From contig NC_092374.1 of assembly GCF_030028105.1 (NCBI RefSeq), forward strand, positions 7,339,334 through 7,403,333: DNA of 64,000 bases, given 5' to 3'. The notes below the pieces were generated by a model. That model saw only the letters and a list, made by a program, of their open reading frames with translations. It searched no databases and was not told the origin of the DNA. Positions 3,425-49,603 of the stretch are shown piece by piece; position 1 is the first letter of the stretch, and each line of letters starts with the position of its first letter. A program made the translations under genes and the position numbers. Source of the stretch: Mobula birostris. Taxonomy: Eukaryota.

Positions 3425-3814
3425 CTGATCTGACCTGCAGCTGGATCTTACTCTGGAACACATGGATAAATGGGGGTTTGACGTGGTCTCTGTTGGATGA
3501 AACTTCATGGCTCTTTTTCCTGAACGCAGCCAGACACAGGTAGCTGTGACTGTCCTCCACACTCAGCTGCTTTATCCTGATGAAGGCGTTTCGCCGCTCT
3601 GGGTCCCGGACGAGCTCGTACCGAGTCACTCCGTTTTCCGCTGCCCACGATCTATTTTCATAACGCCTGAATGTGACGATGTGTCGGTAGGGATCCTTCC
3701 TCATCCACGTCACCGTGTGTGCGGTGAGGTTCTGCGGAGGCCATGTGAACTCACAGGGTAACGTGGCCGAAGCTCCCTCGGTTCCAGTCATCACAGAGAC
3801 ACTCTCGCCGGGAG
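3425..3814 (-). CDS. Ig V-set exon, divergent Siglec/PILR-like; second V domain in transcript order
   Basis: Acceptor ctgtccttccctcAG|CT, donor TCAG|GTAAGA; 390 nt, phase 1-1, open. Encodes B-strand Cys (ATLPCEFTW), C-strand Trp (VTWMR), RYELVRDPERRNAFIRIKQL, F-strand DSHSYLC and G-strand IQLQVR. Confidence 0.85.
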
Positions 3815-4194
3815 CTGAGGGAAGGACAGGTGCCAGAATAAATCAGTTAATCACCACCAAACATGTTTAAACACTGACAAAATTTCCAGCCTACAAAATA
3901 ATAAAAACTCCCCACAGCACCCTTCCAAATGAAAACACCCCCACATGTGTCTGACTAATTGCAAACTATTCCAACAAGAGAAACTCTTTCGAACATAAAA
4001 CAGTCCCATCGGGCAGGAGGTAGAGAAGCCTAAATCTCACACCACCACGTTCAGGAACAGCTAATCTCCTTCAACCATTCAGGTGTTGAACCAATTGACA
4101 CGAACACTGATCAGTACAGTATAACACCAATCAGTACAGTGTAACAACATTAGTCAGTACAGTGTAACAACACTAATTGGTACGGGGTAGTTTT

Positions 4195-7100
4195 TTTCTT
4201 TTTCAGCGGTTTGATCGAGGTATGACTACACAGGCACGTGGACATCAGCGAGTTAGACTGGCAGGCAGAGTTCAAAAAGAAGACAGCTTTATAGAGTCGG
4301 TACCAGAGTGGAGGGAGTCAGAGTAGGAAGGCTTTGGCGATAACACGTTGAGGCGAGGTAAGTTACTTGTGTAGAATAGAAACAGGAAATATGTTGGTGA
4401 GCCCGGTGTTCTGTACTGGGTGTGAGATGTGAGAAGTCCGGGAGACTCTCAGCCACCCGGACGGCCACATCTGCTCCAGGTGCGTCGAGCTTCAGCTCCT
4501 TAGGGACCAGGTAAGGGCAGTGGCGTATCTAAGGTATGGCAGGTATGGCACGTACCCTGGGCACCACTAAGCAGTTTCTATTAAAGTCAGACAGGCCATT
4601 CTCGGACAGTGAAGAACAGAGTTTTCTTCAGATGTACGATCTGTCTTTCATTATCATGGGTGAGAAGCACTAGGATGGTCTTATTTCAGAGCATTGTGTA
4701 AGAAGACCACGAGGAAGAAGGAAGGTGGAGTTGAAAGACGTCAGAGATGAAAGAAACAAATGGCTGGTGAGAACTCCAGAGGCGCTGGGTTAACGACTAA
4801 GGAGGAAATGGAAAGAGTTATGAAGGGAACACTCGACCGTCTTCACAGAGAAATGGACGAAAGGTTCGCTTGTTTGCACGACACTGACGCCAGCTTTGAG
4901 TCCTTCTTGATGTCGAGGGACTGTGTTACGGTGCCGACAGTAACGACTTAACGAAGAGGTGCGAAAATTTGGGCGAATTGTACAGCTCTGATGTTGATGG
5001 ACAGCAGCTATATGAAGAAATTTTGGATTGCAGAATGTTGCTATCAAGGCGGGTCAACATGAAAATATCAAGACCTGAAGAGCTTCTTGAATTTATTGTT
5101 CAGTATGGAGCTGAAGGCTTCTTCCCCAATCTTCGCATTGCTATTCAGATAATGCTAACCATTGCAGTTTCCATCGCCAGCTGTGAGAGATCATTCAGTA
5201 AGTTAAAATAAATACTTTCATATTTGAGAACCTCCATGGGTCAAGGCAGACTCTGTGATCTTGCTCTGATGAAAAAACTGACTTTGATCACATCATAGAC
5301 CAACTTGCATCAGTGAAAGCAAGGAAGGTGCTGTTATAATTTTCATGTAGTGCCATAATTTGTTAGTTAAAAGATTAACGAGCTTGACTCGTATTTTTGA
5401 GCTGATATTCTGGTAAATTTATCTAAAAGATGGGTGTCAGATGTTTGGACAGGGGCACAATTTCAGTGCTTGCCATAGGCGCTATTTTCCGTAGATACGC
5501 CCCTGGGTTAGGGAACTGCAGATGCAGCTCGATGACCTTCGTCTGGTCAGGGAGAGTGAGGAGGTGATAGAGAGGAGTTATAGGCAGGTAGTCACACTGT
5601 GGCATCGGGTACAGATATGTGGGTAACAGTCAGGAGAGGGAAGGGCAAGGGTCAGATATTAGAAAGTACCCCTGCGGCTGTCCACCTTAACTCTAAGTAC
5701 TCTTGCTTGAGTACTGTTGGGGGAGGGGAGGACCTACCTGGGGGAAGCAACAGTGGCCACGCCTCTGGCACAGAGTCTGGCCCTGTGGCTCAGAAGAGTA
5801 GGGAAAGGAAGAGAATGGCAGCAGTGATAGAGGACTCTCTACCTAGAAGGTCAGACATAGGTAGGAAAAGGGAAGAAGTCCTGAAAACAGACTACAGGGA
5901 GTTGAGAAGCAGGACCACAAAGGTGGTAATCTCAGGATCACAGCCTGTGCCACGTGACTGAGTATAGGAATAGAATGAGGTGGAGGATAAATGTGTAGCT
6001 GAGGGATTGGAGCAGGGGGCAGGGATTCAGATTTCTGGATCATTGGGACCTCTTTTGGGGCAGGAGTGATCTTATACAATCAGGATGCGTTGCACTTGAA
6101 TCCCAGGGGGACCAATATCCTGGCGGGGAGGTTTGCTAAGGCTGCAGGTGAGAGTTTAAACCAGAATTGCTGGGGGGGAGGCATGGTGGGAACCAAACAG
6201 AAGAGACGGAGGAAGGGGCAGTTGACTCACAAATAGAGAAAGCTTGGAGACAGTGCGAGAGAGGGAGGATAGGCAGGTGATAGAGAAGGGATAAGCTCAG
6301 TCTGATGCTTCTGTCTATTTAATGCGAAGAGTATCATGAACAAAGCAGATGAGCTTAGACCGTGGATCAGTACTTGGAGATATGATATTGTGGCCATTAC
6401 AGAGACTTGGATGGCTCAGGGACAGGAATGGCTACTTAAAGTGCCAGGCTTTAGGTGTTTCAGGAAGGACAGGGAGGGAGGCAAAAGAGGTGGGGGTGTT
6501 GATCAGAGATAGTGTCACTGTCATAGAAAAGGAAGAAGACATGGAGGGATTGTCTAAGGTGTCTCTGTGGGTGGAGGTTAGGAACAGGAAGGGGTCAATA
6601 ACTCTACTGGGTGTTTTTTATAGACCACCCAATAGTAACAGGGACATCAGGGAGCAGATAGGGAGACATATTCTGGAAAGGTGTAGTAATAACAAGGGTG
6701 TCGTAGTGGGAGATTTTAATTTCCCAAATATTGATTGGCATCTCCCTAGAGCAAGGGGATTAGATGTGGTGGAGTTTGTTAGGTGTGTTCAGGAAGGATT
6801 TCTGACACAATATGTAGATAAGCCTACAAGACGAGAGGCTGTACTTGATCTGGCATTGAGAAGTGAACCTGGTCAGGTGTCAGATCTCTCAGTGGGAGAG
6901 CATTTTGGAGATAGTGATCACAATTCTATCTCCTTTTCCATAGTGCTGGAGAGGATTAGGAACAGACATGTTAGGAAAGTGTTTAATTGGAGTAAGGGGA
7001 AATATGAAGCTACCAGGCAGGAACTTGGAAGTATAAATTTGGAGCAGATGTTCTCAGGGAAATGTACAGAAAAAATGTGGTAAATGTTCAGGGGATATTT

Positions 7101-7276
7101 GTGTGGCGTTCTGCATAGGTACGTTCCAATGAGACAGGGAAAGGATGGGAGGGTACAGGAACCATGGTGTACAAAGGCTGTTGTAAATCTAGTCAAGAAG
7201 AAAAGAAGAGCTTACAAGAGGTTCAAAAAACTAGGTAATGATAGAAATTCAGAAGATTATAAGGCTAGCAGGAAGG
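4195..7276 (+). mobile_element. CR1 LINE copy 2, 5' part (5'UTR, ORF1 zinc finger and esterase, ORF2 endonuclease); interrupted by a hAT element
   Basis: CxxC..CxxC ORF1 start near 4400-4500, esterase-like segment 5820-6160, endonuclease ORF 6349-7083 ([23 protein letters not shown]). Continues at 12117 after the LTR-like insertion. 5' boundary approximate. Confidence 0.9.
4518..5505 (+). mobile_element. hAT-superfamily DNA transposon, internally deleted (988 bp)
   Basis: 14-bp TIRs cagtggcgtatcta / tagatacgcccctg (1 mismatch); 8-bp TSD ggtaaggg (4510-4517) / ggttaggg (5506-5513); hAT C-terminal dimerisation remnant FPNLRIAIQIMLTIAVSIASCERSFSKLK. Confidence 0.92.
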
Positions 7277-7481
7277 TGTCACGGTCCTGATTGGTTATTC
7301 CCTGGGTCCCTTTAAATTTACTTTGTGTCACAATCAGGACCGTTGACTCCTTGTTTTCCTTAATTCATTGTTTCCTTGTGTTTCTTGGGCTCTGTAATTA
7401 AAGGCACTTGAGTCTCAGCTGAACGAGCAGTATTTAGTATTGGGCTTACAGCTGCTCGCGCTAGATCATCATCGGACATCA

Positions 7482-10400
7482 TAGAACATATAGAACATAG
7501 AATAGTACAGCACAGTACAGGGCCTTCGGCCCACAATGTTGTGCCGACCCTCAAACCCTGCCTCCCATATAAGCCCCCACCTTAGATTCCTCCATATACC
7601 TGTCTAGTAGTCTCTTAAACTTCACTAGTGTATCTGCCTCCACCACTGACTCAGGCAGTGCATTCCACACACAACCACTCTCTGAGTAAAAAACCTTCCT
7701 CTAATATCCCCCTTGAACTTCCCACCCCTTACCTTAAAGCCATGTCCTCTTGTATTGAGCAGTGGTGCTCTGGGGAAGAGGCGCTGGCTATCCACTCTAT
7801 CTATTCCTCTTATTATCTTGTACACCTCTATCATGTCTCCTCTCATCCTCCTTCTCTCCAAAGAGTAAAGCCCTAGCTCCCTTAATCTCTGATCATAATG
7901 CATACTTTCTAAACCAGGCAGCATCCTGGTAAATCTCCTCTGTACCCTTTCCAATGCTTCCACACCCTTCCTATAGTGAGGTGACCAGAAATGGACACTG
8001 TACTCCAAGTGTGGCCTAACCAGAGTTTTACAGAGCTGCATCATTACATCACAACTCTTAAACTCTATCCCTCGACTTATGAAAGCTAACACCCCATAAT
8101 CTTTCTTAACTACCCTATCCACCTGTGAGGCAACTTTTAGGGATCTGTGGACATGTTCCCCCAGATCCCTCTGCTCCTCCACACTACAAAGTATCCTACC
8201 ATTTACTTTGTACTCTGCCTTGGAGTTTGTCCTTCCAAAGTGTACCACCTCACACTTCTCCGGGTTGAACTCCATCTGCCACTTCTCAGCCCACTTCTGC
8301 ATCCTATCAATGTCTCTCTGCAATCTTTGACAATCCTCGACACTATCTACAACACCACCAACCTTTGTGTCATCTGCAAACTTGCCAACCCACCCTTCTA
8401 CCCCCACATCTAGGTCGTTAATAAAAATCATGAAAAGTAGAGGTCCCAGAACAGATCCTTGTGGGACACCACTAGTCACAATCCTCCAATCTGAATGTAC
8501 TCCCTCCACCACCACCCTCTGCCTTCTGCAGGCAAGCCAATTCGGAATCCACCTGGCCAAACTTCCCTGGATCCCATTCCTTCTAAATTTCTGAAGAAGC
8601 CTACCGTGTGCAACCTTGTCAAATGCCTTACTAAAATCCATATAGATCACATCCACTGCACTACCCTCATCTATATGCCTGGTCACCTCCTCAAAGAACT
8701 CTATCAGGCTTGTTAGACACGATCTGCCCTTCACAAAGCCATGCTGACTGTCTCTGATCAGACCATGATTCTCTAAATACCTATAGATCCTATCTCTAAG
8801 AATCTTTTCCAACAGTTTTCCCACCACAGACGTAAGGCTCACTGGTCTATAATTATCCGGACTATCCCTACTACCTTTTTTGAACAAGGGAACAACACTC
8901 ACCTCCCTCCAATCCTCCGGTACCATTCCCGTGGACAACGAGGACATAAAGATCCCAGCCAGAGGCTGAGCAATCTCTTCTCTCGCCTCGTGGAGCAGCC
9001 TGGGGAATATTCCGCCAGGCCCTGGGGACTTATCTGTCCTAATGTATTTTAACAACTCTCAACACCTCCTCTCCCTTAATATCAACATGCTCCAGAACAT
9101 CAACCTCACTCATATTGTCCTCACCATCATCAAGTTCCCTCTCATTGGTGAATACCGAAGAGAAGTATTCATTGAGGACCTCACTCCCTTCCACAGCCTC
9201 CAGGCACATCTTCCCACCTTTATCTCTAATCGGTCCTACCTTCACTCCTGTCATCCTTTTTTTCTTCACATAATTGAAGAATGCCTTGGGGTTTTCCTTT
9301 ACCCTACTCGCCAAGGCCTTCTCATGCCCCCTTCTTGCTCTTCTCAGCCCCTTAAGCTCCTTTCTTGCTTCCCTATATTCCTCAATAGACCCATCTGATC
9401 CTTGCTTCCTAAACCTCATGTATGCTGCCTTCTTCCTCCTGACTAGATTTTCCACCTCACTTGTCACCCATGGTTCCTTCACCCTACCATTCTTTATCTT
9501 CCTCACCGGACAAATTTATCCCTTACATCCCGCAAGAGATCTCTAAACATTGACCACATGTCCATAGTACATTTCCCTGCAAAAACATCATCCCAATTCA
9601 CACCCGCAAGTTCTAGCCTTATAGCCTCATAATTTGCCTTTCCCCAATTATAAATTTTCGTGTCCTCTTTGATTCTATCCTTTTCCATGATAATTATAAA
9701 GGCCAGGGGGCAGTGGTCACTGTCCCCCAGATGCTCACCCACTGAGAGATCTGTGACCTGACCCGGTTCATTACTTAGTACTAGATCTAGTATGGCATTC
9801 CCCCTGGTCGGCCTGTCCACATACTGTGACAGGAATCCATACTGGACACACTTAACAAATTCTGCCCCATCTAAACCCTTGGAACTAATCAGGTGCCAAT
9901 CAATATTAGGGAAGTTAAAGTCACGCATGATAACAACCCTGTTATTTTTGCACCTTTCCAAAATCTGCCTCCCAATCTGCTCCTCTGTATCTCTGCTGCT
10001 ACCAGAGGTCCTATAGAATAACACCAGTAGAGTAACTGCTCCCTTCCTGTTCCTGACTTCCACCCATATTGACTCAAAAGAGGATCCTGCTACATTACCC
10101 ACCCTTTCTGTAGCTGTAATAGTATCCCTGACCAGTAATGTCACCCCTCCTCCCCTTTTTCTGCCCTCTCTATCCCTTTTAAAGCACTGAAATCCAGGAA
10201 TATTGAGAATCCATTCCTGCCCTGGTGCCAGCCAAGTCTCTGTAATGGCCACTACATCATAATTCCATGTATGTATCCAAGCTCGCAGTTCATCACCTTT
10301 GTTCCTGATGCTTCTTGCATTGAGGTACACACATTTCAGCCCTTCTACCTTACTGTCTTTACACCATTTGTTCTGCTTCTCTTTCCTCAAAGCCTCTCTG

Positions 10401-11782
10401 TATGTTAGATCTGGCTTTACTCCATGCACTTCTTTCACTGTTCTATCGCCCTGGGTCCCATCCCCCTCGCAACTTAGTTTAAACCCTCCCGAACCATGCT
10501 GGCAAACCTACCTGCAAGGATATTGCTCCCCCTCGAGTTCAGGTGCAACTCATCCAATCTGTACAGGTCCCACCTTCCCCAGAAGAGATCCCAATGATCT
10601 AAAAATCTAAAACCCTGCTCCCTGCACCAACTCCTCAGCCACGCATTCAAATGCCATCTCCTCCAATTCTTACCATCACTGTCACGTAGCACTGGCAGCA
10701 ATCCTGAGAGCGTCACCCTTGAGGTCCTGTTCTTCAGCCTTCTGCCTAATTCCCGAAACTCACACTTCAGGACCTCATCCCTCTTCCTGCCTATGTCGTT
10801 GGTGCCAACATGTATCACGACTTCTGGTTGCTTTCCCTCTCGTACCAGGATGTCGTGCACCCGGTCAGAGACATCCCGGACCCTGGCACCCGGGAGGCAA
10901 CAAAGCATGTGGGTGTCCTTCTCACGTCCACAAAATCTCCTGTCTGCTCCCCTGACTATAGAATCTCCAATGACGACAGCTCTCCTCTTGTCCGTCCACC
11001 CTTCTGCACCACCGGGTCAGACTCAGTGCTGGAGGCCCTGCCACTGTGGCTCACACCTGGTCGGTCGTCCCTGCCGACAGTATCCAGGACGGTATACTTC
11101 TTATTCAGGAGAATGGCTATAGGGGTGCTCTGCACTACCTGTCTGCTCACCTTCGCTTTCCCCCCTCTGACTGTCACCGTGACCTGCTTCCGACAGCCTA
11201 GGTGTGACTACCTCCCTGTAGCTCTCATCTATGACTGCCTCATTCTCCCTTATGAGTCGAAGGTCACCCAGCTGCTGCTCCAGATTCCTTACACGGTCTT
11301 CCAGATCACTCAGCCGTATGCACTTCTGGCAGATGTGACTCTGCGGGAGAGGGGAGTTCCCCCAAGACTGCCACATCTCACATGAGAGGCATATCACCGT
11401 CTCAGGAGACATTGTAAAAACTAACTGCGAGCTAGCTTGTCCTCAGCCTCTTCTCGTCGAAGCCTCTCGAATCAAAGCCTCAAGGCTCCACTCCTTCATT
11501 GGCCCACTCACTCACTGACCACTCCGCTTGAGCTATCCTGCTATTTAACTGTTTGAGCTTTTCAAAATGTTTGGTCACCTGACCTCGACTGCCCAATCAG
11601 TTGCTTTCTGCTGAGTCTGAGCTATTCAAATCTTAATTGTCTAATCAACAGCTTTTTGCTGATCTATTCAAATCTTGATTGACTTGATTGCACAGACCAA
11701 CTGCCAAAACTGCCAGAATCTCTCGAGTCAAAGCCTCAAAGCTCCACTCCTTCAATGGCCCACTCACGCACTGGCTGCTTTT
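7482..11782 (-). mobile_element. Near full-length CR1 LINE (ORF1 zinc finger and esterase, ORF2 EN and RT), frameshifted
   Basis: ORFs 11101-11412 (CLSCEMW..CQKC), 10474-10908 (HVGTNDIG), 9503-10438 (EN), 9039-9506 and 7625-9055 (RT with FADD); tail revcomp atagaacatatagaacatagaa at 7481; putative TSD catca (7477-7481 / 11783-11787). Confidence 0.95.
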
Positions 11783-11789
11783 CATCACC

Positions 11790-11945
11790 GAAGCAAGGTC
11801 TCTGATGTGCCGAGTCCGGGCTCTGATGTTCTGAGTTCGGGCTCTGATGTTCCAAGTCCGGGCTCTGATGTTCCAAGTCCGGGCTTTGATGTTCTGAGTC
11901 TGGGCTCTGATGTTTCGGGTCCGGTCTCTGATGTTCTGAGTCCCG
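11790..11945. repeat. 21-bp tandem repeat inside the LTR-like element
   Basis: About 7 units of ctctgatgttctgagtccggg-like sequence. Confidence 0.85.
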
Positions 11946-12116
11946 AGACTTACCCACGCTTATTCCTGCTTCTGCTATGCCCACTCCTTGATCTGCCTCT
12001 GAACAATCCTTGCTTTCCTGCTTTCCTAGTAACGATTAATAAACTCTATTCGTGTTAATGCTACCAAACGTGTTTGTGTCCTGCTTTTGGGTCCATCCGT
12101 ACCCGCACTTGTGACA

Positions 12117-13518
12117 GAAGGAGTTGAGGAATGAAATTAGGAGAGCCAGAAGGGGCCATGAGAAGATGTTGGTGAGCAGGATTAAGGAAAACCGCAAGGC
12201 ATTCTACAAGTATGTGAAGAGCAAGAGGATAAGACGTGAGAGAATAGGACCAATCAAGTGTGACAGTGGAAAAGTGTGTACGAAATCGAAGGATATAGCA
12301 GAGATACTTAATGAATACGTTGCTATGGAAAAGGACCTTGGCATTTGTAGGGATGACTTACAGCGGACTGAAAAGCTTGAGCATACAGACATTAAGAAAG
12401 GGGATGTGCTGGAGCTTTTGGAAAGCATCAAGTTGGATAGGGCACCGGGACCAGGCTCTGTGAGAGGCCAGAGAGGAGATTGCTGAGCCTCTGGCAATGA
12501 TTTTTGCATCACAAATGAGAGAGATTCCAGAGGACTGGAGGGTTGCGGATGTTGTTCCCTTATTCACGAAAGGGAGTAGAGATAGCAAAGGAAATTATAG
12601 ACCAGTGAGTCTTACTTCAGTGGTTGGTAAGTTGATGGAGAAGATCCTGAGAGGCAGGATTTATGAACATTTGGAGAGGCATAATATGATTAGGAATAGT
12701 CAGCATGGCTTTGTCAAAGGCAGGTCATGCCTTACAAGCCTAATTGAATTTTTTGAGGATGTGACTAAACACATTGATGAAGGAACAGTAGTACATGTAG
12801 TGTATATGGATTTCAGCAAGGCATTTGACAAGGTACCCCATGCAAGGCTTATTGAGAAAGTCAGGAGGCATGGGATCCAAGAGGACATTACTTTGTGGAT
12901 CCAGAACTGGCTTGCCCACAGAAGGCAAAGAGTGGTTGTAGACGGGTCATATTCTGCATGGAGGTTGGTGACCAGTGGTGTGCCTCAGGGATCTGTTCTG
13001 GGACCCCTGCTCTTCGTGATTTTTATGAATGACTTGTATGAGGAGGTGGAGGGATGGGTTAGTAAATTTGCTGATGACACAAAGGTTGGGGGTGTTGTGG
13101 ATAGTGTGGAGGGCTGTCAGAGGTTACAGCAGGAAATTGATAGGATGCAAAAATGGGCTGAGAAGTGGCAGATGGAGTTCAACCCAGATAAGTGTGAGGT
13201 GGTTCATTTTGGTAGGTCAAATATAATGGCAGCATATAGTATTAATGGTAAGGCTGTTGGCAATGTGGAGGATCAGAGGGATCTAGGGGTCCAAGTCCAT
13301 AGGACACTCAAAGCTGCTGCGCAGGATGACTGTCCGGTTAAGAAGGCATACAGTGTATTGGCTTCTTAAATATGGGATTCCTTTGTAGTTAGTATCAAAG
13401 GGTACTTATAATCTGCACAATCCTCTTAGGACCAACATCCTGATTATATGTTATATTACAGAATGATCCCCATGAAGATTGAGTTCAAGAGCCGAGAGGT
13501 AATGTTACTACTATATAG
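12117..13518 (+). mobile_element. CR1 copy 2, middle part (RT)
   Basis: ORFs 12124-12486 and 12497-13369 with RT motifs including SKFADDTK; colinear with copy 1 (510-1926). Confidence 0.95.
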
Positions 13519-16500
13519 AAACATAGAAAATAGGTGCAGGAGTAGGCCATTCGGCCCTTCGAGCCTGCATCGCCATTTATTATGATCATGGCTGATCATC
13601 CAACTCAGAACCCTGCACCAGCCTTCCCTCCATGCCCCCTGATCCCCGTAGCCACAAGGGCCATATCTAACTCCCTCTTAAATATAGCCAATGAACTGGC
13701 CTCAACTGTTTCCTGTGGCAGAGAATTCCATAGATTCACCACTCTCTGTGTGAAGAAGTTTTTCCTAATCTTGGTCCTAAAAGGCTTCCCCTTTATCCTC
13801 AAACTGTGACCCCTCGTTCTGGACTTCCCCAACATCGGGAACAATCTTCCTGCATCTAGCCTGTCCAATCCCTTTAGGATTTTATACGTTTCAATCAGAT
13901 CCCCCCTCAATCTTCTAAATTCCAATGAGTACAAGCCTAGTTCATCCAGTCTTTCTTCATATGAAAGTCCTGCCATCCCAGGAATCAATCTGGTGAACCT
14001 TCTTTGTACTCCCTCTATGGCAAGGATGTCTTTCCTCAGATTAGGGGACCAAAACTGCACACAATACTCCAGGTGTGGTCTCACCAAGGCCTTGTACAAC
14101 TGCAGTAGTACCTCCCTGCTCCTGTACTCAAATCCTCTCGCTATAAATGCCAGCATACCATTCGCCTTTTTCACCGCCTGCTGTACCTGCATGCCCACTT
14201 TCAATGACTGGTGTATAATGACACCCAGGTCTCGTTGCACCTCCCCTTTCCCTAATCGGCCACCATTCAGATAATAATCTGTTTTCCTATTTTTGCCACC
14301 AAAGTGGATAACTTCACATTTATCCACATTAAATTGCATCTGCCATGAATTTGCCCACTCACCCAACCTACCCAAGTCACTCTGCATCCTCTTAGCATCC
14401 TCCTCACAGCTAACACTGCTACCCAGCTTCATGGCATCCGCAAACTTGGAGATGCTGCATTTAATTCCCTCATCTAAGTCATTAATATATATTGTAAACA
14501 ACTGGGGTCCCAGCACTAAGCCTTGCGGTACCCCACTAGTCACTGCCTGCCATTCTGAAAAGGTCCCGTTTATTCCCACTCTTTGCTTCCTGTCTGCTAA
14601 CCAATTCTCTATCCACATCAATACCTTACCCCCAATACCGTGTGCTTTAAGTTTGCACACTAATCTCCTGTGTGGGACCTTGTCAAAAGCCTTTTGAAAA
14701 TCCAAATATACCACATCCACTGGTTCTCCCCTATCCACTCTACTAGTTACATCCTCAAAAAATTCTATGAGATTCGTCAGACATGATTTTCCTTTCACAA
14801 ATCCATGCTGACTTTGTCCGATGATTTCACCGCTTTCCAAATGTGCTGTTATCACATCTTTGATAACTGACTCCAGCAGTTTCCCCACCACCGACGTTAG
14901 GCTAACCGGTCTATAATTCCCCGGTTTCTCTCTCCCTCCTTTTTTAAAAAGTGGGGTTACATTAGCCACCCTCCAATCCTCAGGAACTAGTTCAGAATCT
15001 AACGAGTTTTGAAAAATTATCACTAATGCATCCACTATTTCTTGGGCTACTTCCTTAAGCACTCTGGGATGCAGACCATCTGGCCCTGGGGATTTATCTG
15101 CCTTCAATCCCTTCAATTTACCTAACACCACTTCCCTACTAACATGTATTTCGCTCAGTTCCTCCATCTCACTGGACCCTCTGTCCCCTACTATTTCTGG
15201 AAGATTATTTATGTCCTCCTTAGTGAAGACAGAACCAAAGTAATTATTCAATTGGTCTGCCATGTCCTTGCTCCCCATAATCAATTCACCTGTTTCTGTC
15301 TGTTGGGGACCTACATTTGCCTTTACTAGTCTTTTCCTTTTTACATATCTATAAAAGCTTTTACAGTCAGTTTTTATGTTCCCTGCCAGTTTTCTCTCAT
15401 AATCTTTTTTCCCCTTCCTCATTAAGCCCTTTGTCCTCCTCTGCTGAACTCTGAATTTCTCCCAGTCCTCAGGTGAGCCACTTTTTCTGGCTAATTTGTA
15501 TGCTTCTTCTTTGAAATTGATACTATCCCTAATTTCTCTTGTCAGCCATGGGTGCACTACCTTCCTTGATTTATTCTTTTGCCAAACTGGGATGAACAAT
15601 TGTTGTAGTTCATCCATGCAATCTTTAAATGCTTGCCATTGCATATCCACTGTCAATCCTTTAAGTGTCATTTGCCAGTCTGTCTTAGCTAATTCGCGTC
15701 TCATACCTTCAAAGTTACCCCTCTTTAAGTTCAGAACCTTTGTTTCTGAATTAACTATGTCACTCTCCATCTTAATGAAGAATTCCACCATATTATGGCC
15801 ACTCTTACCCAAGGGGCCTCTCACGACAAGATTGCTAATTAACTCTTCCTCATTGCTCAAAACCCAGTCTAGAATAGCCTGCTCTCTGGTTGGTTCCTCG
15901 ACATATTGGTTCAAAAAACCATCCCGCATACATTCCAAGAAATCCTCTTCCTCAGCACCTTTACCAATTTGGTTCACCCAATCTACATGTAGATTGAAGT
16001 CACCCATTATAACTGCTGTTCCTGTATTGCACATATTTCTAATTTCCTGTTTAATACCATCTCCGACCTCACTACTACTGTTAGGTGGCCTGTACACAAC
16101 TCCCACCAGCGTTTTCTGCCCCTTAGTGTTACGCAGCTCTACTCATATCGATTCCACATCTTCCCGGCTTATGTCCTTCCTTTCTATTGCGTTAATCCCC
16201 TCTTTAACCAGCAACGCCACCCCACCTCCTTTTTTTTCATGTCTATCCCTCCTGAATACTGAATATCCCTGAACGTTGAGCTCCCATCCTGGTCACCCTG
16301 GAGCCATGTCTCTGTGATCCCAACTATATCATAATCATTAATAACAATCTGCACTTTCAATTCATCCACCTTGTTACGAATGCTCCTTGCATTGACACAC
16401 AAAGCCTTCAGGCACTCTTTTACAACTCTCTTAGCCCTTATACAATTATGTTGAAAAGTGGCCCTTTTTAATGCTTGCCCTGGATTTGTCGGCCTGCCAC

Positions 16501-16834
16501 TTTTACTTTTCTCCTTACTACTTTTTGCTTCTACCCTCACTTTACACCTCTCTGTCTCTCTGCACTCTTTCCCATCCCCCTGTTATGAACTAACCTCCTC
16601 TCGCCTAGCCTCTTTAATTTGATTCCCACCCCCCAACCATTCTAGTTTAAAGTCACCTCAGTAGCCCTCGCTAATCTCCCTGCCAGGATATTGGTCCCCT
16701 TAGGATTCAAGTGTAACCCGTCCTTTTTGTACAGGTCACGCCTGCGCCAAAAGAGGTCCCAATGATCCAAAAACTTGAATCCCTGCCCCCCTGCTCCAAT
16801 CCCTCAGCCACACATTTATCCTCCACCTCATCGC
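13519..16834 (-). mobile_element. 5'-truncated CR1 LINE with an 833-aa EN-RT ORF, nested in copy 2
   Basis: ORF 13605-16106; RT catalytic motif reads FADA instead of FADD and the EN start is frameshifted (16184-16540); 6-bp TSD atatag (13513-13518 / 16835-16840). Confidence 0.95.
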
Positions 16835-17310
16835 ATATAGGACTTAGGTCAGACCCCACTTAGAGTACTGTGCTCATTTCTGGTCACCTCACTGCAGAAA
16901 GGATATGGAAACTATAGAAAGGGTGCAGAGGAGATTTACAAGGATGTTGCCTGGATTGGGGAGCATGCCTTATGAGAACAGGTTGAGTGAACTCGGCCTT
17001 TTCTCCTTGGAGCAACGGAGGATGAGAGGTGACCTGATAGAGGTGTATAAGATGATGAGAGACACTGATCGTGTGGATAGTCAGAGGTTTTTTCCCAGGC
17101 TGAAATGGCTAACATGAGAGGGCACAGTTTTTAAGGTGCATGGAAGTAGGAACCGAGGAGATGTCAGGGATAAGTCTTTTTACGCAGAGTGGTGAGTGTG
17201 TGGAATGGGCTGCCAGCGACAGTGGTGGTGTCGGAACGATAGGATCTTTTAAGAGACTCCTGGACAGGTACATTGAGCTCAGGAATATAGAGGGATATGG
17301 ATAACCTGAG
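16835..17310 (+). mobile_element. CR1 copy 2, 3' end
   Basis: Resumes atataggacttaggtcagaccccacttagag, matching copy 1 from 1921; ORF 16905-17117. Confidence 0.92.
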
Positions 17311-18049: not shown

Positions 18050-18051
18050 CT

Positions 18052-18098
18052 GCAGAGAGAGAGAGTGAGAGATACTGGGAGTGAGTGAGACAGGGAGT

Positions 18099-18139
<41 letters not shown>

Positions 18140-18198
18140 TGACAGAGGGAGATACTGGGAGTGAGTGAGACACGGATTGAGTGAGAGCGAGAGTGTGT

Positions 18199-34720: not shown

Positions 34721-37170
34721 GCTTGTCTACCGAGGCCATATGGGTGGAGCTGAGAAACAGGAATGGTATGACCACATTAATGGGGTTGTATTATAGACCA
34801 CCCAATAGTCAGCGAGAATTGAAGGAGCAAACCTACAGAGAGATTGTAGACAACTGCAGGAAACATAAAGTTGTGATAGTAGGGGATTTTAACTTTCCAC
34901 ATATGGATTGGGATTCCCATACTGTTAAAGGTCTAGACGGCTTAGAGTTTGTAAAATGTGTTCAGGAAAGTTTTCTAAATCAATATATAGAGGAACCAAC
35001 TAGAGAGGATGCAATATTAGACCTCCTGTTAGGAAACGAGTTAGGACAGGCGACGGAAGTGTGTGTAGGGGAACACTTTGGTTCCAGTGATCATAACACC
35101 ATTAGTTTCAACTTGATCATGGATAAAGATAGATCTGGTTCTCCGGTTGAGGTCCTAAACTGGAAAAGGACCAAATTTGAAGAAATGAGAAAGGATCTAA
35201 AAGGTGTAGATTGGGACAGGTTGTTCTCTGGCAAGGATGTGATTAGTAAGTGGGAGGCCTTCAAAGGAGAAATTTTGAGAGTGCAGAGTTTGTATGTTCC
35301 TGTCAGGATTAAACGCAAATTGAATAAGAATATGGAACCTTGGTTCTCAAGGGATATTGGAACTCTGATAAAGAAGAAGAGAGAGATGTATAACATGTAT
35401 AGGAAACAGGGAGCAAATAAAGTGCTTGAGGAGTACAAAAAGTGCAAAAAGAAACTTAAGAAAGAAATCAGGAGGGCTAAAAGAAGACATGAGGTTGCTT
35501 TGGCAGTCAAGGTGAAGGATAATCCAAAGAGTTTCTACAGGTATATTAAGAGCAAAAAGATAGTAAGGGGTAAAATTGGTTCTCTCAAAGATCAGAGTGG
35601 TCGGCTATGTATGGAACCAAAAGTAATGGGGGAGATCTTAAATGGGTTTTTTGCATCTGTATTTATGAAGGAAATTGGCATGGAGACAATGGAAATAGTC
35701 AGGTAATGGAACCTATACAGATTGAGGAGGAGGAGGTGCTTGCTACCTTGAGGCAAATCAGAGTAGATAAATCCCTAGGACCTGACAGGGTATTCCCTCG
35801 GACCTTGAAGGAGACTAGTGTTGAAAAAGCAGGGGTTCTGGCAGATGTATTTAAAATGTCGGTATCTACGGGTGAGGTGCCGGAGGATTGGAAGATAGCT
35901 CATGTTGTTCCGTTATTTAAAAAAGGTTCTAAAAATAATCTGGGAAATTATAGGCCAGTAAGTTTGACATCAGTAGTAGGTAAATTGTTGGAAGGAGTAC
36001 TAAGGGATAGGATCTACAAGTATTTGGATAGACAGGGACTTATTAGGGAGAGTCAACATGGCTTTGTGCGTGGTAGGTCATGTTTGACCAATCTATTGGA
36101 GTTTTTCAAGGAGGTTATCAGGAAAGTGGATGAAGGGAAGGCAGTGGATGTTGTCTACATGGACTTCAGTAAGGCCTTTGACAAGGTCCCGCATGGGAGG
36201 TTAGTTAGAAAGTTTCAGTCGCTAGGTATACAAGGAGAGGTAGTAAATTGGATTAGACATTGGCTCAATGGAAGAAGCCAAAGAGTGGTAGTGGAGGATT
36301 GTTTCTCTGAGTGGAGGCTTGTGACTAGTGGTGTGCCACAGGGATCAGTGCTGGGTCCAATTTTATTCGTCACCTATATCAATGATGTGGATGATAATGT
36401 GGTAAATTGGATCAGCAAATTTGTTGATGATACAAAGCTTGGAGGTGTAGTGGACAGTAAGGCAGGTTTTCAAAGCTTGCAGAGGGATTTGGACCAGCTG
36501 GAAAAATGGGCTGAAAGATGGCAGTTGGAGTTTAATACAGACAAGTGTGAGGTATTGCACTTTGGAAGGACAGACCAAGGTAGAACATACAGGGTAAATG
36601 GTAGAGCACTGAGGAGTGCAGTAGAACAGAGGGATCTGTGAATACAGATACAAAATTCCCTAAAAGTGGCGTCACAGATAGATAGGGTCGTAAAGAGAGC
36701 TTTTGGTACATTGATCTTTAAAGTCAAAGTATTGAGTATAAGAGTTGGAATGTTATGGTGAGGTTGAATTAGGAAACGTCGACTCAGACCATGAGAGGTC
36801 CGCATTGGGCATTTTCGCACCTTACAAGGCGCAGATTGGAAGTCTGTGTGGGGCGCCACTCCTTGCACAGACTAGAACAATGTGTGATTAAGTGCCTTGC
36901 TCCAGGACCTAAACATGCTGCCACAGCTGAGGCTCAAACTAGTGACCTTCAAATCACTAGACGAATGCCTTAACCACTTGGCCACGTGCCCAACACAACA
37001 CATGCCCAACACAAGGTCTGAGTCGACATTCCCCCCTGAATAAGGCATTAGTGAGGCCAAATTTGGAGTATTCTGTACAGTTTTGATCACCAAATTACAA
37101 GAAGGATATTAATTAGTTTGAAAGGGTGCAGAGGAGGTTTACAAAGATGTTGCCAGGACTTGAGAAACTG
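34721..37170 (+). mobile_element. CR1 LINE ORF2 (EN and RT), frameshifted; SINE inserted near the 3' end
   Basis: ORFs 34723-35706 and 35607-36641; resumes near 37040 after the SINE. Confidence 0.93.
36775..36990 (-). mobile_element. tRNA-derived SINE
   Basis: Minus strand TGGCCAAGTGG (A box) and AGTTTGAGCC (B-box-like) followed by a non-tRNA body. Confidence 0.7.
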
Positions 37171-40665: not shown

Positions 40666-43600
40666 CATAGAACATAGAATAGTACAGCACAGTACAGGCC
40701 CTTCAGCCCACAATGTTGTACCAACCCTTAAACCTTGTCTCCCATATAATCCTCCACCTTAAATTCCTCCATATACCTGTCTAGTAGTCTCTTAAACTTC
40801 ACTAGTGTATCTGTCTCCACCACTGACTCAGGCAGTGCATTCCATGCACCAACCACTCTCTGAGTAAAAAACCTTCCTCTAATATCCCCCTTGAACTTCC
40901 CACTCCTTACCTTAAAGCTATGTCCTCTTGTATTGAGCAGTGGTGCCCTGGGGAAGAGGTGCTGGCTGTCCACTCTATCTATTCCTCTTACTATCTTGTA
41001 CACCTCTATCATGTCTCCTCTCATCCTCCTTCTCTCCAAAGAGTAAAGCCCTAACTCCCTTAATCTCTGATCATAATGCATACTCTCTAAACCAGGCAAC
41101 ATCCTGGTAAATCTGCTCTGGACCCTTTCCAATGCTTCCACATCCTTTCAATAGTGAGGCAACCAGAAACGGACACAGTACTCCAAGTGTGGCCTAACCA
41201 GGGTTTTATAGAACTGCATCATTACCTCACAACTCTTAAACTCCATCCCTCGACTTATGAAAGCTAACACCCCATAAGCTTTCTTAACTACCCTATCTAC
41301 CTGTAAGGCAACTTACAGGGACCTGTGGACATGTACCCCCAGATCTCTCTGCTCCTCCACACTACCAAGTATCCTGCTATTTACTCTGTACTCTGCCTTG
41401 GAGTTTGTCCTTCCAAAGTGTACCACCTCACACTTCTCCGGGTTGAACACCATCTGCCACTTCTCAGCCCACTTCAGCATCCTATCAATGTCTCTCTGCA
41501 ATCTTCGACAATCCTCTGCACTATCTACAACACCACCAACCTTTGTGTCATCTGCAAACTTGCCAGCCCACCCTTCTACCCCCACATCCAGGTCATTAAT
41601 AAAAATCACGAAAAGTAGGGGTCCCAGAACTGATCCTTGTGGGACACCACTAGTCACATCCCTCCAATCCAAATGTACTCCCTCCACCATGACCCTCTGC
41701 TTTCCGCAGGCATGCTAATTATGAATCCACCTGACCAAACCTCTCTGGATCCCACGTCTTCTGATTTTCTGAGTAAGCCTACCATGTGAAACCTTGTCAA
41801 AAGCCTTACTAAAATCCACGTAGATCACATCCACTGCAGTACCCTCATCTATATGCCTGCTCACCTTCTCAAAGCACTCTATCAGGCTTGTTAGACATGA
41901 TCTGCCCTTTACAAAGCCATGCTGACTGTCCTTGATCAGACCATGATTCTCTAAATGCTCGTGGGTCCTATCTTTTAAAATCTTTTCCAACAGCTTAAGG
42001 CTCACAGGTCTATACTTACCCGGACTATCCTTACTACCATTTTTGAACAAGGGGACAACATTCGCCTCCCTCCAATCCTCCGGTACCATTCCCGTGGACA
42101 ACGAGGACATAAAGATCCTAGCCAGAGGCTCAGCAATCTCTTACGTTGCCTCGCGGAGCAGCCTGGGGAATATTCCGTCATGCCCCGGGGACTTAACTGT
42201 CCTAATGTATTTTAACAACTCCAACACCTCCTCTCCCTTAATATCAACATGCTCCAGAACATCATCCTCACTCATATTGTCCTCACCATCATCAAGTTCC
42301 CTCTCATTAGTGAATACCAAAGAGAAGTATTCATCGAGGACCTCACTCACTTAGAAACCATAGAAACTACAGCACAGAAACAGGCCTTTTGGCCCTTCTT
42401 GGCTGTGCCGAACCATTTTCTGCCTAGTCCCACTGACCTGCACACGGACCATATCCCTCTATACACCTCCCATCCATGTATCTGTCCAATTTATTCTTAA
42501 ATGTTAAAAAAGAACCCGCATTTACCACCTCGTCTGGCAGCTAATTCCATACTCCCACCACTCTCTGTGTGAAGAAGCCCCCCCTAATGTTCCCTTTAAA
42601 CTTTTCCCCCCTCACCCTTAACCCATGTCTTCTGGTTTTTTTCTCCCCTTGCCTCAGTGGAAAAAGCCTGCTTGCATTCACTCTATCTATACCCATCATA
42701 ATTTTATATACCTCTATCAAATCTCCCCTCATTCTTCTACGTTCCAGGGAATAAAGTCCTAACCTATTCAACCTTTCTCTGTAACTGAGTTTCTCAAGTC
42801 CCGGCAACATCCTTGTAAACCTTCTCTGCACTCTTTCAACCTTATTTATATCCTTCCTGTAATTTAGTGACCAAAACTGAACACAATACTCCAGATTCGG
42901 CCTCACCAATGCCTTATACAACCTCATCATAACATTCCAGCTCTTATACTCAATACTTTGATTAATAAAGGCCAATGTACCAAAAGCCCTCTTTACGACC
43001 CTATCTACCTGTGACGCCACTTTTAGGGAATTTTGTATCTGTATTCCCAGATCCCTCTGTTCCACTGCACTCCTCAGTGCCTTACCATTAACCCTATATG
43101 TTCTCCCTTGGTTTGTCCTTCCAACGTGCAATACCTCACACTTGTCAGTATTAAACTCCATCTGCCATTTTTCAGCCCATTTTTCCAACTGGTCCAAGTC
43201 CCTCTGCAGGCTCTGAAAACCTTCCTCACTGTCTACTACACCTCCAATCTTTGTATCATCAGCAAACTTGCTGATTCAATTTACCACATTATCATCCAGA
43301 TCATTGATATAGATGACAAATAACAATGGACCCAGCACTGATCCCTGTGGCACACCACTAGTCACAGGCCTCCACTCAGAGAAGCAATTCTCTACCACCA
43401 CTCTCTGGCTTCTTCCATCGAGCCAATGTCTAATCCATTTTACCACCTCTCCATGTATACCTAGTGACTGAATTTTCCTAACTAACCTCCCATGCGGGAC
43501 CTCGTCAAAGGCTTTACTGAAGTCCATGTAGACAATATCCACTGCCTTCCCTTCATCCACTTTCCTGGTAACCTCCTCGAAAAACTCCAATAGATTGGTC

Positions 43601-46285
43601 AAACATGACCTACCACGCACAAAGCCATGTTGACTCTCCCTAATAAGTCCCTGTCTATCCAAATGCTTGTAGATTCTGTCTCTTAGTACTCCCTCCAATA
43701 ACTTGCCTACTACTGATGTGAAACTCACCCGCCTATAATTTCCTGGATTACTTTTCGATCCTTTTTTAAACAACGGAACAACATGAGCCACTCTCCAATC
43801 CTCCGGCACTTCACCCATAGACAGCAACATTTTAAATATTTCTGCCAGGGCCCCCGCAATTTCAACACTAGTCTCCTTCAAGGTCCGAGGGAACACTCTG
43901 TCAGGTCCCGGGGATTTATCCACTTTAATTTTCCTCAAGACAGCAAGTACCTCCTCCTTTTCAATCTGTACAGTTTCCATGGTCTCACTGCTTGATTCCC
44001 TCAATTCCATAGATTTCATGCCAGCTTCCTTAGTAAATACAGACGCAAAAAACCTATTTAGGATCTCCCCCATTTCCTTTGGTTCCGCACATAGCTGACC
44101 ACTCTGATCTTCAAGAGGACCAATTTTATCCCTTACAATCCTTTTGCTCTTAATATACTTGTAAAAGCTCTTTGGATTATCCTTCACTTTGACTGCCAAG
44201 GCAACCTCATGTCTTCTTTTAGCCGTCCTGATTTCTTTCTTAAGTATTTTCTTGCACTTCTTATACTCCTCAAGCACCTGATTTACTCCCTGTTTCCTAT
44301 ACATTTCATACAACTCCCTCTTCTTCTTTATCAGAGTTGCAATATCCCTTGAGAACCAAGGTTCCTTATTCCTATTCAATTTGCCTTTAATCCTGACAGG
44401 AACATACAAACTCTGCACTCTCAAAATTTCCCCTTTGAAGGCTTCCCACCTACCAATCACATCTTTGCCAGAAAACAACCTGTCCCAACCCACGCTTTTT
44501 AGATCCTTTCTCATTTCTTCAAATTTGGCCTTCTTCCAGTTCAGAACCTCAACCCTAGGACCAGATCTATCCTTGTCCATGATCAAATTGAAACTAATGT
44601 TGTTATGATCACTGGAACCAAAGTGCTCCACTACACAGACTTCTGTCACTTGCCCTAATTCGTTTCCTAACAGGAGATCCAATATTGCATCCCCTCTAGT
44701 TGATCCCTCTATATATTGATTTAGAAAACTTTCCTGAACACATTTTACAAACTCTAAACCATCTAGACCCCTAACAGTATAGGAGTCCCAATCAATGTAT
44801 GGAAAATTAAAATCCCCTACTACCACAACTTTATGTTTCCTGCAGTTGACTGCTATCTCTCTGCAGATTTGCTCTTCCAAGTCTCGTTGACTGTAATACA
44901 ACGGTGGTCTGTAATACAATCCCACTAATGTGGCCATACCTTTCCTGTTTCTCAGCTCCACCCACAAGGACTCAGTAGACAAGCCCTCTAATCTGTCCTG
45001 CCTGAGCACTGCTGTAATATTTTCCCTAACAAGCAATGCTACTCCCCCACCTTTCATTCCCCCACCTTCCACAGCCTCCAGGCACATCTTCCCATCTTTA
45101 TCTCTAATCGGTCCTACCTTCACTCCTGTCATCCTTCTTTTCTTCGCATAATTGAAGAACGCCTTGGGGTTTTCCTTTACCCTACTCACCAAGGCCTTCT
45201 CATGCCCCCTTCTTGCTCTCCTCAGCCCCTTCTTAAGCTCCTTTCTTGCTACCCTATATTCCTCAATAGACCCATCTGATCCTTGCTTCCTAAACCTCAT
45301 GTATGCTGCCTTCTTGCACCTGACTAGATCTTCCACCTCACTTGTCACCCATGGTTCCTTCACCCTCCCATTCTTTATCTTCCTCACCGGGATAAATTTA
45401 TCCCTAACATCCTGCGAGAGATCCCTAAACATCGACCACATGTCCTTAGTACATTTCCCTGCAATAACAATATCCCAATTCACACCCACAAGTTCTAGCC
45501 TTATAGCCTCATAATTTGCCCTTCCCCAATTAAAAATTTTCCTGTCCTTTCTGATTCTATCCTTTTCCATGATAATGCTAAAGGCCAGGGAGCAGTGGTC
45601 ACTGTCCCCCAGATGCTCTCCCACTGAAAGATCTGTGACCTGACCCCATTTATTACCTAATACTAGATCTAGTATGGCATTCCCCCAATCCTGTCAACAT
45701 ACTGTGACAGGAATCCATCCTGGACACACTTAACAAACTCTGCCCCGTCTAAACCATTGTAACTAATCAGGTGCCAATCAATATTAGGGAAGTTAAAGTC
45801 ACCCTTGATAAAAACCCTGTTGTTTTTGCACTTCTCCAAAATCTGCCTCCCAATCTGCTCCTCTGTATCTCTGCTGCTACCAGGGGGCCTATAGAATACT
45901 CCCAATAGAGTATTCCACCCATACTGACTCAAAAGAGGATCCTGCTTCATTACCCACCCTTTCTGTAGCTGTCATAGTATCCCTGACCAGTAATGCCCAA
46001 CCCTTCTCTGCTTTCCCCCCTCTCTATCCCTTTTAAAGAACTGAAATCCTGGAATATTGAGAATCCATTCCTGCCCTGGTGCCAGCCAAGTCTCTGTAAT
46101 GGCCACTACATCATAATTCCATGAATGTATCCAAGCTCTCAGTTCATCACCTTTGTTCCTGATGCTTCTTGCATTGAGGTACACGCACTTCAGCCCTTCT
46201 ACCTTACTACCTTTACACCCTTTATTCTGCTTCTCTTTCCTCAAAGCCCCTTTATATGTTAGATCTGGCTTTTCTCCATGCACTA
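40666..46285 (-). mobile_element. CR1 of the same family as 7482-11782, with internal deletions, split by another CR1
   Basis: 40666-42350 (RT pieces 40728-41141, 41313-41690, 41715-42110) and ~45061-46285 (EN pieces); near-colinear with 7490-10430. Confidence 0.9.
42351..45060 (-). mobile_element. 5'-truncated CR1 (family of 34721-37170) nested in the previous CR1
   Basis: Tail revcomp agaaaccatagaaac at ~42353; RT ORF 42541-43197; EN-RT in 43276-45060. Confidence 0.9.
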
Positions 46286-48394: not shown

Positions 48395-49008
48395 TGTAGG
48401 GTTCTCAGTAATATTAACTGTTAACTGCTAAAATAAAATGGCTTCTCTGTAGTGTTATAATGAAATGGTTTCTCTGTAATGTTAACTGATGAGGTAATGT
48501 TTCTTTGTAGCTGAAATGTTTGGGTTATAACTATAGAGATAATGGGGAACTAACCAATGGAAGTTATGTTACTCTATCTGTATGTGTGGGAACCTGAGTG
48601 AGTGCGCAGGACGTTTCGGGAGGAGAGGCGAAGAGGAAGGACGTGCTGGGAGCGCTCTGGTAGACCACCGTGGTTGGTCCCAGTCCGAGGGTCGCGGAGT
48701 TCGGAGGAAATGGAATGGTGGAGAGAAGACCCTGTTCCTTGAGCTCCAGCGATTGTGCACGAACTGTTTAACTTTGATAGAGTGGCGCCTTTTTCTTTTA
48801 TATTTTGTTTCCCCACTAATCACATAGTCACGGTTAGATTTATAAAGTGTAATCATTTAATCGCTTATTGTGTACTGTCTGATGTTTGCATTCTGGGTCT
48901 GTACTGGGGTACATTACACAGCATCCGCACAAACTCGATTACCCAGGTTGGCGGAGCTGAGGGTTCTTCCCCTGGACGAACACGAGCTGAGCGAGTCGGA
49001 GGCTCACA
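48395..49008 (+). mobile_element. 3' LTR of Gypsy A
   Basis: Polypurine tract ggtggggggagaa (48382-48394), then TGTAGG...; ends ggctcaCA. End position inferred. Confidence 0.7.
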
Positions 49009-49214
49009 AATATCCGTATACACTTACTGTGATTCAATTTTTCTGTATTATTATGTATTGCATTGTACTGTCGCCACAAAGTTAACAAGTTTCACGACAA
49101 ATGCCGGTGATATTAAGCTTGGTTCTGATTCTGAAGACCGTCGAACAGCCAATGTACAGAGGGGAAAAATCGTGAAAACAATAAAAGTAAGCAAATAGCA
49201 TTCAGAACTGAAGA

Positions 49215-49290
49215 ACGCACAGACAGCGGCGAGAATTGAACCTGGGTCACAGGGACTGTGAAGCATCATGCTAACCACCACGCTACAGCT
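49215..49290 (-). mobile_element. tRNA-derived SINE head
   Basis: Minus strand gtagcgtggtggttagcatg..GGTTCAATTC (A and B boxes); no complete cloverleaf or CCA stem supported. Confidence 0.65.
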
Positions 49291-49542
49291 TCGCTCCAAA
49301 TTCCAGACCACCCAGGCTTGGAATTGTGCCCGGCCTTTAACTTGGACGTCTCTCCCCAGTAGTACTGGGGTTCATCGTCACCAGCAGGCAGTCCACCCCA
49401 GCACTCAGGGAAGGACAGGGTCCCAACACCAACCCTCCACTGGCAGAACCAACGTCTAAGTCGATCGCGCTTCACCAGAAAGTAAAACGAGCCTTTAGGA
49501 GAGAGACAACGAGGAGATAGGCGGACAATGGAAAACACCTAC

Positions 49543-49603
49543 TGTATCCCCGGACTGAGACGGACAACAGGACCGTGCAGAGACAAACCCGGAGAGAGAG
49601 CAT
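49543..49603 (-). CDS. Candidate signal-peptide (leader) exon: MLSLRVCLCTVLLSVSVRGY plus 1 nt
   Basis: ATG at 49603 in gaaATG context; n-region Arg, hydrophobic core VCLCTVLLSVSV, small residue at VRG; donor CA|GTAGGT leaves phase 1, matching both V acceptors; lies in a non-repeat, CpG-containing island. No transcript evidence. Confidence 0.65.

Follow-up and report, generated by a model that had tools for sequence, protein, structure and literature searches.

Three exons on the minus strand of a 64-kb stretch of the Mobula birostris genome (hereafter the window, meaning the whole stretch analysed) are genuine and form the front half of a Siglec-15-derived receptor gene. Most probably, they supply the 5′ portion (signal peptide, V1 and V2) of one gene in a family of Siglec-15-derived surface receptors of cartilaginous fish, with V1 as a lectin domain, V2 as a spacer, and signalling of the paired type.

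Exons and introns in the window

The exons, and the introns with their repeats, are listed here from the leader leftwards.

49603–49543, minus strand: exon 1, leader, 61 nt, beginning with ATG, phase 1, donor GTAGGT; encodes the signal peptide MLSLRVCLCTVLLSVSVRGY plus 1 base
18050–49542, minus strand: intron 1, 31.5 kb, with LINE fragments and a minisatellite
43279–45624, minus strand: LINE endonuclease/RT ORF region in intron 1 (Pfam RVT_1, Exo_endo_phos)
34723–36638, plus strand: LINE endonuclease/RT ORF region in intron 1 (Pfam RVT_1, Exo_endo_phos)
19491–27116: minisatellite in intron 1, 7.6 kb, 40 bp × 192 (TRF and self-BLAST)
18049–17669, minus strand: exon 2, V1, 381 nt, phase 1, acceptor ending in CTCTGCAG, donor GTGAGG
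3815–17668, minus strand: intron 2, 13.9 kb, largely LINE remains
13608–16106, minus strand: LINE ORF in intron 2 (Pfam RVT_1 and endonuclease)
12497–13366, plus strand: LINE ORF in intron 2 (Pfam RVT_1 and endonuclease)
7628–10438, minus strand: LINE ORF in intron 2 (Pfam RVT_1 and endonuclease)
3814–3425, minus strand: exon 3, V2, 390 nt, phase 1, acceptor ending in CCCTCAG, donor GTAAGA
1–3424, minus strand: start of intron 3; the downstream exon (membrane anchor with or without tail) is absent here

When the leader, V1 and V2 exons are spliced in silico, the result is a single open reading frame, 277 codons long with one base over. The original prediction had placed three minus-strand exons at these positions, with GT–AG sites, phase 1 throughout and a single frame; all of this was confirmed, and the peptide is as quoted there. 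Two further points of that prediction, that no other leader is present between the two V exons and that transposons fill most of the space there, also held. Exon 1, which matches the leader of the M. birostris paralogue P0001 at 90% identity (tblastn), is the only family-type leader that BLAST and a motif search detected in the window, and the introns contain LINE ORFs for endonuclease and reverse transcriptase in addition to the 7.6-kb minisatellite.

Family proteins used as tblastn queries (about 180–260) against the 64 kb matched these three exons and no other site. BLAST, motif search and family tblastn revealed neither a second leader nor extra Ig exons in the window. By region, tblastn found no Ig exon within intron 1, tblastn and motif searches found no Ig, leader, membrane or tail exon within intron 2, and family tblastn found no C2 exon anywhere in the window. 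The parts present are those of a single gene: a leader, a V1 and a V2, each occurring once, in order and on the same strand. A search against Rfam identified no RNA families in the window.

The first V domain

Judged by its sequence, V1 is a Siglec-15-type V domain. It passes the Pfam V-set cut-off (E = 2.4e-12), and its best PDB match by phmmer is human Siglec-15 (7zoz, E = 4.7e-17), with the runner-up at 3e-7. In the human protein, R143 is the essential strand-F arginine, and W44 and both disulfides have been described (PMC10264397). V1 keeps the strand-F arginine, with RYRCRVEL aligning to RYFCRVEF of human Siglec-15, as well as all four disulfide cysteines (LPCTF, FHCSY, SGCDT and YRCRV), the equivalents of C64–C142 and C95–C104; these make up a B–F pair and an extra C′–C″ pair. 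Regarding other sialic-acid contacts, W44 is kept and the human contact residue Y87 is replaced by Gly (phmmer alignment). The G-strand region is ∼3 residues shorter, with a Phe near the position of Y154 (same alignment, extended). Within the family, V1 is 88% identical to that of P0001 and 87% identical to that of P0185.

The second V domain

V2 is likewise a true V-set domain, the second of the pair. It passes the Pfam V-set cut-off (E = 5.3e-13), and its AlphaFold model (pLDDT 81.6) has nine strands, including C′ and C″, with low confidence for residues 103–113 of the F–G loop. The best 50 Foldseek matches listed for this model are nearly all V-type Ig domains, and among single-domain sequences matched by the V2 profile, the Siglec-15 V domain again ranks first (44 bits). 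V2 reads YLCLAAF in strand F and lacks the arginine. The family signature VTWMRKDPYRHIVTF is present, as is the pattern GTEGxSxTLPC ... VTWMRKxxY ... DxxxYxC; the F–G loop is long, and all 19 invariant columns of the family V2 alignment are retained (19/19). V2 is 91% identical to domain 2 of P0225 from M. hypostoma. V1 and V2 share about 30–34% identity, and V2 is an old separate domain type rather than a recent duplicate of V1.

A receptor family of sharks, rays and skates

Sharks, rays and skates have at least 100 predicted proteins with the order leader-V1-V2 (34, then 102 elasmobranch proteins), anchored either by the PLGLK type or with an ITIM tail. In the bamboo shark, locus L001 comprises four exons whose phase-1 junction sequences match those of the window gene, and its V2-to-TM intron measures 8.5 kb. 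The order in these proteins and the bamboo shark exon layout lend support to the leader-V-V model that had been proposed. Family members with near-identical ectodomains come in two kinds, activating (with a membrane lysine and the PLGLK motif) and inhibitory (with an ITIM tail). Among the paralogues, P0001, P0002 and P0004 have the membrane lysine. More generally, V-V-C2 and V-V are the usual builds of Siglec-15-like proteins in cartilaginous fish, the chimaera and devil-ray proteins being V-V-C2-TM.

Strong matches to the V2 type were confined to cartilaginous fish, in line with the earlier suggestion of a lineage-specific immune receptor. The idea that the locus represents an undescribed system is not supported; the two-V build is already present in the computational annotation of many related genomes. 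A search of the available literature found no paper on Siglec-15-derived V-V receptors of cartilaginous fish. The window gene is a fairly ordinary further copy of a large shark-and-ray receptor family.

Membrane and tail exons, and read data

A sensitive tblastn search and a motif scan, covering both activating and inhibitory tails, revealed no membrane or tail exon in the window; hence, these exons must lie beyond its left edge. The only hit, a segment at 61318–61482 that matches the last 55 residues of P0225, was rejected, as it appears to be a repeat that was taken up into that model and not a family exon. Among public sequencing runs, the share of sampled words present peaks at 0.42, and no run is recorded as RNA of this species. 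Contigs of reads from four runs over positions 1–6000 consist mostly of repeats, and those over V2 are 3–15% divergent and end inside the exon. A single contig continues past the 3425 donor, pointing to an origin in DNA or unspliced RNA.

Placement and integrity of this copy

In a maximum-likelihood tree of the V1+V2 ectodomain, the window copy falls in a Mobula-only clade (100/99), where it adjoins P0185, a protein with an ITIM tail, at sub-threshold support (92/88). The V2 tree also sets the copy beside ITIM-tail genes, again at sub-threshold support (85/87). The window V2 is nearest to inhibitory-tail genes, but only weakly so. We decided against reading the signalling type off the trees, since the ITIM-tail neighbours are sub-threshold and activating and inhibitory forms are mixed across trees. 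Identity to any retrieved protein peaks at 88–91%, so this copy may be unannotated; no match of at least 95% was found among proteins of 112–553 aa in a database clustered at 90% identity. If no protein was called at this locus, weak expression or some defect beyond the window could be the reason.

A rival reading takes the copy for a duplicate that is silent or in decay, its front exons intact and its 3′ end broken or missing, or the gene not expressed. We consider this unlikely. It is true that no match of at least 95% turned up even though the M. birostris paralogues are all listed, but the protein searches were limited in length and clustered as described above. The introns are very large and rich in retroelements, but annotated family genes elsewhere span 28–80 kb, and large introns are therefore normal for the family. 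V2 is altered at three columns that are at least 90% conserved in the family (G to R twice, E to K once), yet the overall number of conserved-column deviations is within the ordinary range: V1 departs at 1 of its 36 conserved columns and V2 at 3 of its 42, where the family medians are 1 and 2. Consequently, the copy shows no apparent sequence sign of decay, and relaxed constraint was rejected as an explanation, as the copy is no outlier in this count. The read contigs gave no RNA support for the window copy, which would fit a silent duplicate, but the 277-codon frame is open, the splice sites are canonical, and the structural cysteines and the arginine are all retained.

A gene with more ectodomain exons than these three, in which three or four V domains would precede the membrane anchor, also seems improbable. 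Family proteins with two V2-type domains do exist (P0030, P0038, P0187 and P0225), and in the V2 tree the window V2 groups with domain 2 of P0225, at sub-threshold support (85/87). However, P0225 is a 5′-truncated model of 80 kb that may fuse two genes, and the majority of family members are L-V1-V2-TM. That V1 and V2 come from two adjacent genes with separate leaders is highly improbable: although 13.9 kb and retroelements separate them and single-V isoforms (V1-TM-ITIM) are known in the family (P0016, P0018 and P0025), neither a second leader nor a membrane or tail exon lies between them, the end of V1 and the start of V2 are both phase 1 with good splice sites, and V1-V2 adjacency is conserved in the models of dozens of species and at the bamboo shark locus.

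Proposed mode of action

We thus return to a single gene of the leader-V1-V2 family. In such a receptor, V1 would bind a sialylated glycan via the conserved strand-F arginine, and V2 would hold V1 off the membrane. The long, variable F–G loop of V2 may provide a second contact surface. The signal would run through exons outside the window, by one of two routes. A TM helix with lysine (the PLGLK motif, common to Siglec-15) would recruit a DAP12-type ITAM adaptor; alternatively, a lysine-free helix would be followed by an ITIM-bearing tail. Since the closest paralogues are of both types, the family would behave as paired activating and inhibitory receptors. In a more specific version of this model, which we put forward as a tentative possibility without favouring it, the window copy is an intact, expressed and unannotated paired receptor, in which V1 still reads sialic acid and the long F–G loop of the inserted V2, which varies between paralogues, forms a second, fast-evolving recognition surface, e.g. 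for pathogen ligands.

For annotation, the analysis extends the Siglec-15-like array of the manta ray by one copy that had probably been overlooked. The family proteins are already in public annotation and the architecture as such is known, so the window adds little that is new in this respect. For comparative immunology, the family shows that the Siglec-15 lineage, supposedly single and conserved, gained a second V early in cartilaginous fish and later expanded in sharks and rays into activating/inhibitory pairs.

Comparison with known systems

The nearest relatives are the Mobula paralogues, namely P0001 (activating), P0185 and P0236 (both with ITIM tail), and P0002, P0004 and P0225 of M. 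hypostoma. They share leader type, exon order and clade with the window gene, and their V1 and V2 domains are 84–91% identical to it. None is at least 95% identical, indicating that the window gene is a separate copy.

More distant are the V-V-C2-TM(Lys) proteins, Callorhinchus P0071 and M. hypostoma P0075. Like the window gene, they have leader-V1-V2 with a second domain of the V2 type; the window's subfamily, in contrast, is without a C2 between V2 and the membrane. Identity of the window domains to those of P0075, in which the arginine is lost, is only 34% for V1 and 29% for V2. P0075 aligns with bird Siglec-15 over its C2 and membrane parts (33% identity, E = 3e-15), an alignment that links the entire group to Siglec-15.

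Siglec-15 of bony vertebrates (human Q6ZMC9, PDB 7zoz; bird P0173) itself shares with the window gene the V1 type, the strand-F arginine, W44 and both disulfides, and paralogues of the window gene bear the PLG(L/I)K membrane motif of the bird protein. Differences lie in the second domain, which is V-set in the window gene and C2-set in Siglec-15; in Gly at the place of human Y87; and in gene number, Siglec-15 being a single conserved activating gene whereas the window gene is part of a multigene family, some of whose members are inhibitory and bear ITIMs.

Near-identical ectodomains joined to either a charged membrane residue or an ITIM tail are also seen in Siglec-5/-14, PILR, SIRP and KIR. 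Here, the likeness is in logic only, as the window domains descend from Siglec-15 and not from any of these families.

Human Siglec-XII has two tandem N-terminal V-set domains; it is CD33-related, and C2 domains lie behind the V pair. The tandem arrangement at the N-terminus is shared with the window gene. However, the window V1 matches CD33-type domains (CD33, Siglec-8) weakly, with E of about 1e-3 to 2e-3 compared to 4.7e-17 for Siglec-15, and the window gene differs further in that its V2 is a distinct old type and that the window holds no C2 exon.

Exon structure of the window copy

Both the minus-strand reading and splicing of the pieces by script bear out the exon lengths, splice sites, phase 1 boundaries and single frame of the original prediction; once joined, the exons stay open for all 277 codons. 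The acceptors consist of a polypyrimidine tract followed by AG, and both large exons pass the curated Pfam V-set threshold (E = 2.4e-12 for the first, Siglec-15-type domain, V1; 5.3e-13 for the second, V2).

Exons of the window copy and repeats of intron 1
49603-49543, minus strand: leader exon, 61 nt, GT donor, ends in phase 1
18049-17669, minus strand: V1 exon, 381 nt, canonical acceptor and GT donor, ends in phase 1
3814-3425, minus strand: V2 exon, 390 nt, canonical acceptor and GT donor, ends in phase 1
19491-27116: minisatellite in intron 1, 7.6 kb, 40-bp unit, about 192 copies, 70% matches
18050-18330: long CT/GA-rich simple repeat directly upstream of the V1 acceptor, 100-bp period, 2.3 copies

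When ∼180–260 related proteins were compared with the 64-kb window by tblastn, matches fell at the three exon places only, and BLAST and a motif scan found one family-type leader. The window thus has a single copy each of leader, V1 and V2, all on one strand and in that order.

LINE ORFs coding for endonuclease and reverse transcriptase occur in the introns (31.5 and 13.9 kb). Counting both strands, the window has at least six ORF fragments of LINE type, with endonuclease, reverse transcriptase or both, at 7628-16106, 34723-36638, 43279-45624 and 55987-56868, some of them stop-free for up to 833 codons. The minisatellite, which lies 1.4 kb upstream of the V1 acceptor, carries an internal duplication (92% identical, offset ∼2.6 kb) and gives rise to many spurious ORFs. 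Because of the CT/GA-rich repeat, the coding strand has an exceptionally long polypyrimidine tract at the V1 acceptor.

Organization of related genes

Relatives were gathered by a word-based search (34 predicted proteins) and then a profile search (102), and come from Mobula birostris, M. hypostoma, Hypanus, Hemitrygon, Narcine, skates, sawfish and many sharks. Their sequences run leader-V1-V2 and then take one of two endings. One is a lysine-bearing membrane helix (..LCIPLGLKTLALLV..) followed by a short tail (DKLRKRRD); in the other, the helix has no lysine and leads into a long tail that carries ITIM-like motifs (..CTYASI.., ..VIYAAV..). In a bamboo shark locus (L001), four exons encode leader, V1, V2 and TM/tail, with an 8.5-kb V2-to-TM intron, and the junctions agree with those of the window both in phase and in the sequence flanking the splice sites. 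Family genes in Mobula span 28–80 kb, so the 46-kb spread of the window copy is normal. The order in relatives and the L001 layout uphold the proposal of one leader-V-V gene, which we hold with high confidence. A division into two genes, with a separate leader for V2, is unsupported, as the only family-type leader in the window precedes V1.

The C-terminus of the M. hypostoma model P0003 (..LGQKPLTHSAGYGEGFGSWGGGVK) is the V2 donor read through into the intron, with homologous intron text at 3405-3424 of the window; the model is either an annotation artefact or a secreted form of the protein. In another M. hypostoma model, P0225, the final 55 residues have an 80% protein match at 61318-61482 (minus strand); they come after its ITIM tail and resemble repeat sequence read into the prediction, suggesting that this model is over-extended or fused.

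The two V domains

Against all solved structures, V1 matched the human Siglec-15 V domain best (E = 4.7e-17), followed by JAML, sialoadhesin and CAR (∼3e-7). Mutation of R143 in strand F of Siglec-15 abolishes sialic-acid binding, and the structure also has a B-F disulfide, an unusual C'-C'' disulfide and W44 (PMC10264397). In the alignment, V1 retains the strand-F arginine, both disulfides and W44; Y87 is not retained. The B-strand cysteine (LPCTF), present in the window copy, is W, Y or F in the annotated paralogues P0001, P0004, P0019 and P0025, which keep the strand-F cysteine. Part of the family can therefore do without the core V1 disulfide.

In V2, strand F (YLCLAAF) lacks the arginine. 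The AlphaFold model of V2, calculated from 19 family sequences (mean pLDDT 81.6), has nine predicted strands, including C' and C'', and a long F-G loop (residues 100–116; 103–113 of low confidence). Among the Foldseek matches listed, the top ones are nearly all V-type Ig domains (nectin, CAR, PVR, Siglec-15), and when a V2 profile was used, the Siglec-15 V domain again came first among single-domain sequence matches (44 bits). Identity between V1 and V2 is only ∼30–34%, which marks V2 as a domain type of its own and of long standing.

Status of the window copy and its signalling type

Among the retrieved proteins (112–553 aa), the best identity to the window copy was 88% over V1 and V2 and 91% over V2 alone, and none was identified as its own product. 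Hence the copy appears to have no protein model in that size range. Deviations were counted at columns conserved in ≥90% of the family: V1 has one (H to L; family median 1) and V2 three (G to R twice, E to K; family median 2), a number equalled or exceeded by 25 of the 99 family V2 domains. By these counts there is no sign of decay. No run among the sequencing runs searched carries the exons near-identically, and read contigs aligned over positions 1-6000 are uninformative about the junctions.

Neither type of membrane/tail exon occurs in the window, including the 3.4 kb downstream of V2, so the gene continues past the left edge. In the ectodomain tree, the window copy falls in a Mobula-only clade (100/99), adjoining the ITIM-tail paralogue P0185 (92/88), and in a V2-only tree its V2 pairs with domain 2 of the ITIM-tail P0225 (85/87). 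These placements lean weakly towards an inhibitory tail, and only weakly because activating and inhibitory forms are intermixed in this neighbourhood.

Relation to Siglec-15 and other known systems

The original prediction had also proposed a possibly undescribed receptor. This does not hold, as the family is already in public annotation; the window copy is a further, ordinary member, possibly itself unannotated. Nothing on Siglec-15 of elasmobranchs or chimaeras turned up in the non-subscription literature searched.

Callorhinchus P0071 and M. hypostoma P0075 are V1-V2-C2-TM(Lys) proteins; the NCBI name Siglec-15 was formerly attached to the first and still is to the second. In P0075, C2 and the membrane part can be aligned with bird Siglec-15 (33% identity, E = 3e-15), and the membrane motif PLG(L/I)K is common to birds, rays and sharks. 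These features point to a history in which the second V domain would have been inserted before the chimaera/elasmobranch split, C2 subsequently lost in the subfamily of the window copy, and the subfamily afterwards expanded into pairs of activating and inhibitory members. Siglec-15 of bony vertebrates is V-C2 in bird; lungfish and gar have duplicated V1-type domains, an event distinct from the second-V insertion. The window gene is thus derived from Siglec-15, yet differs from Siglec-15 proper in that its second domain is V-set and not C2-set, and it is unrelated to the double-V type of Siglec-XII.
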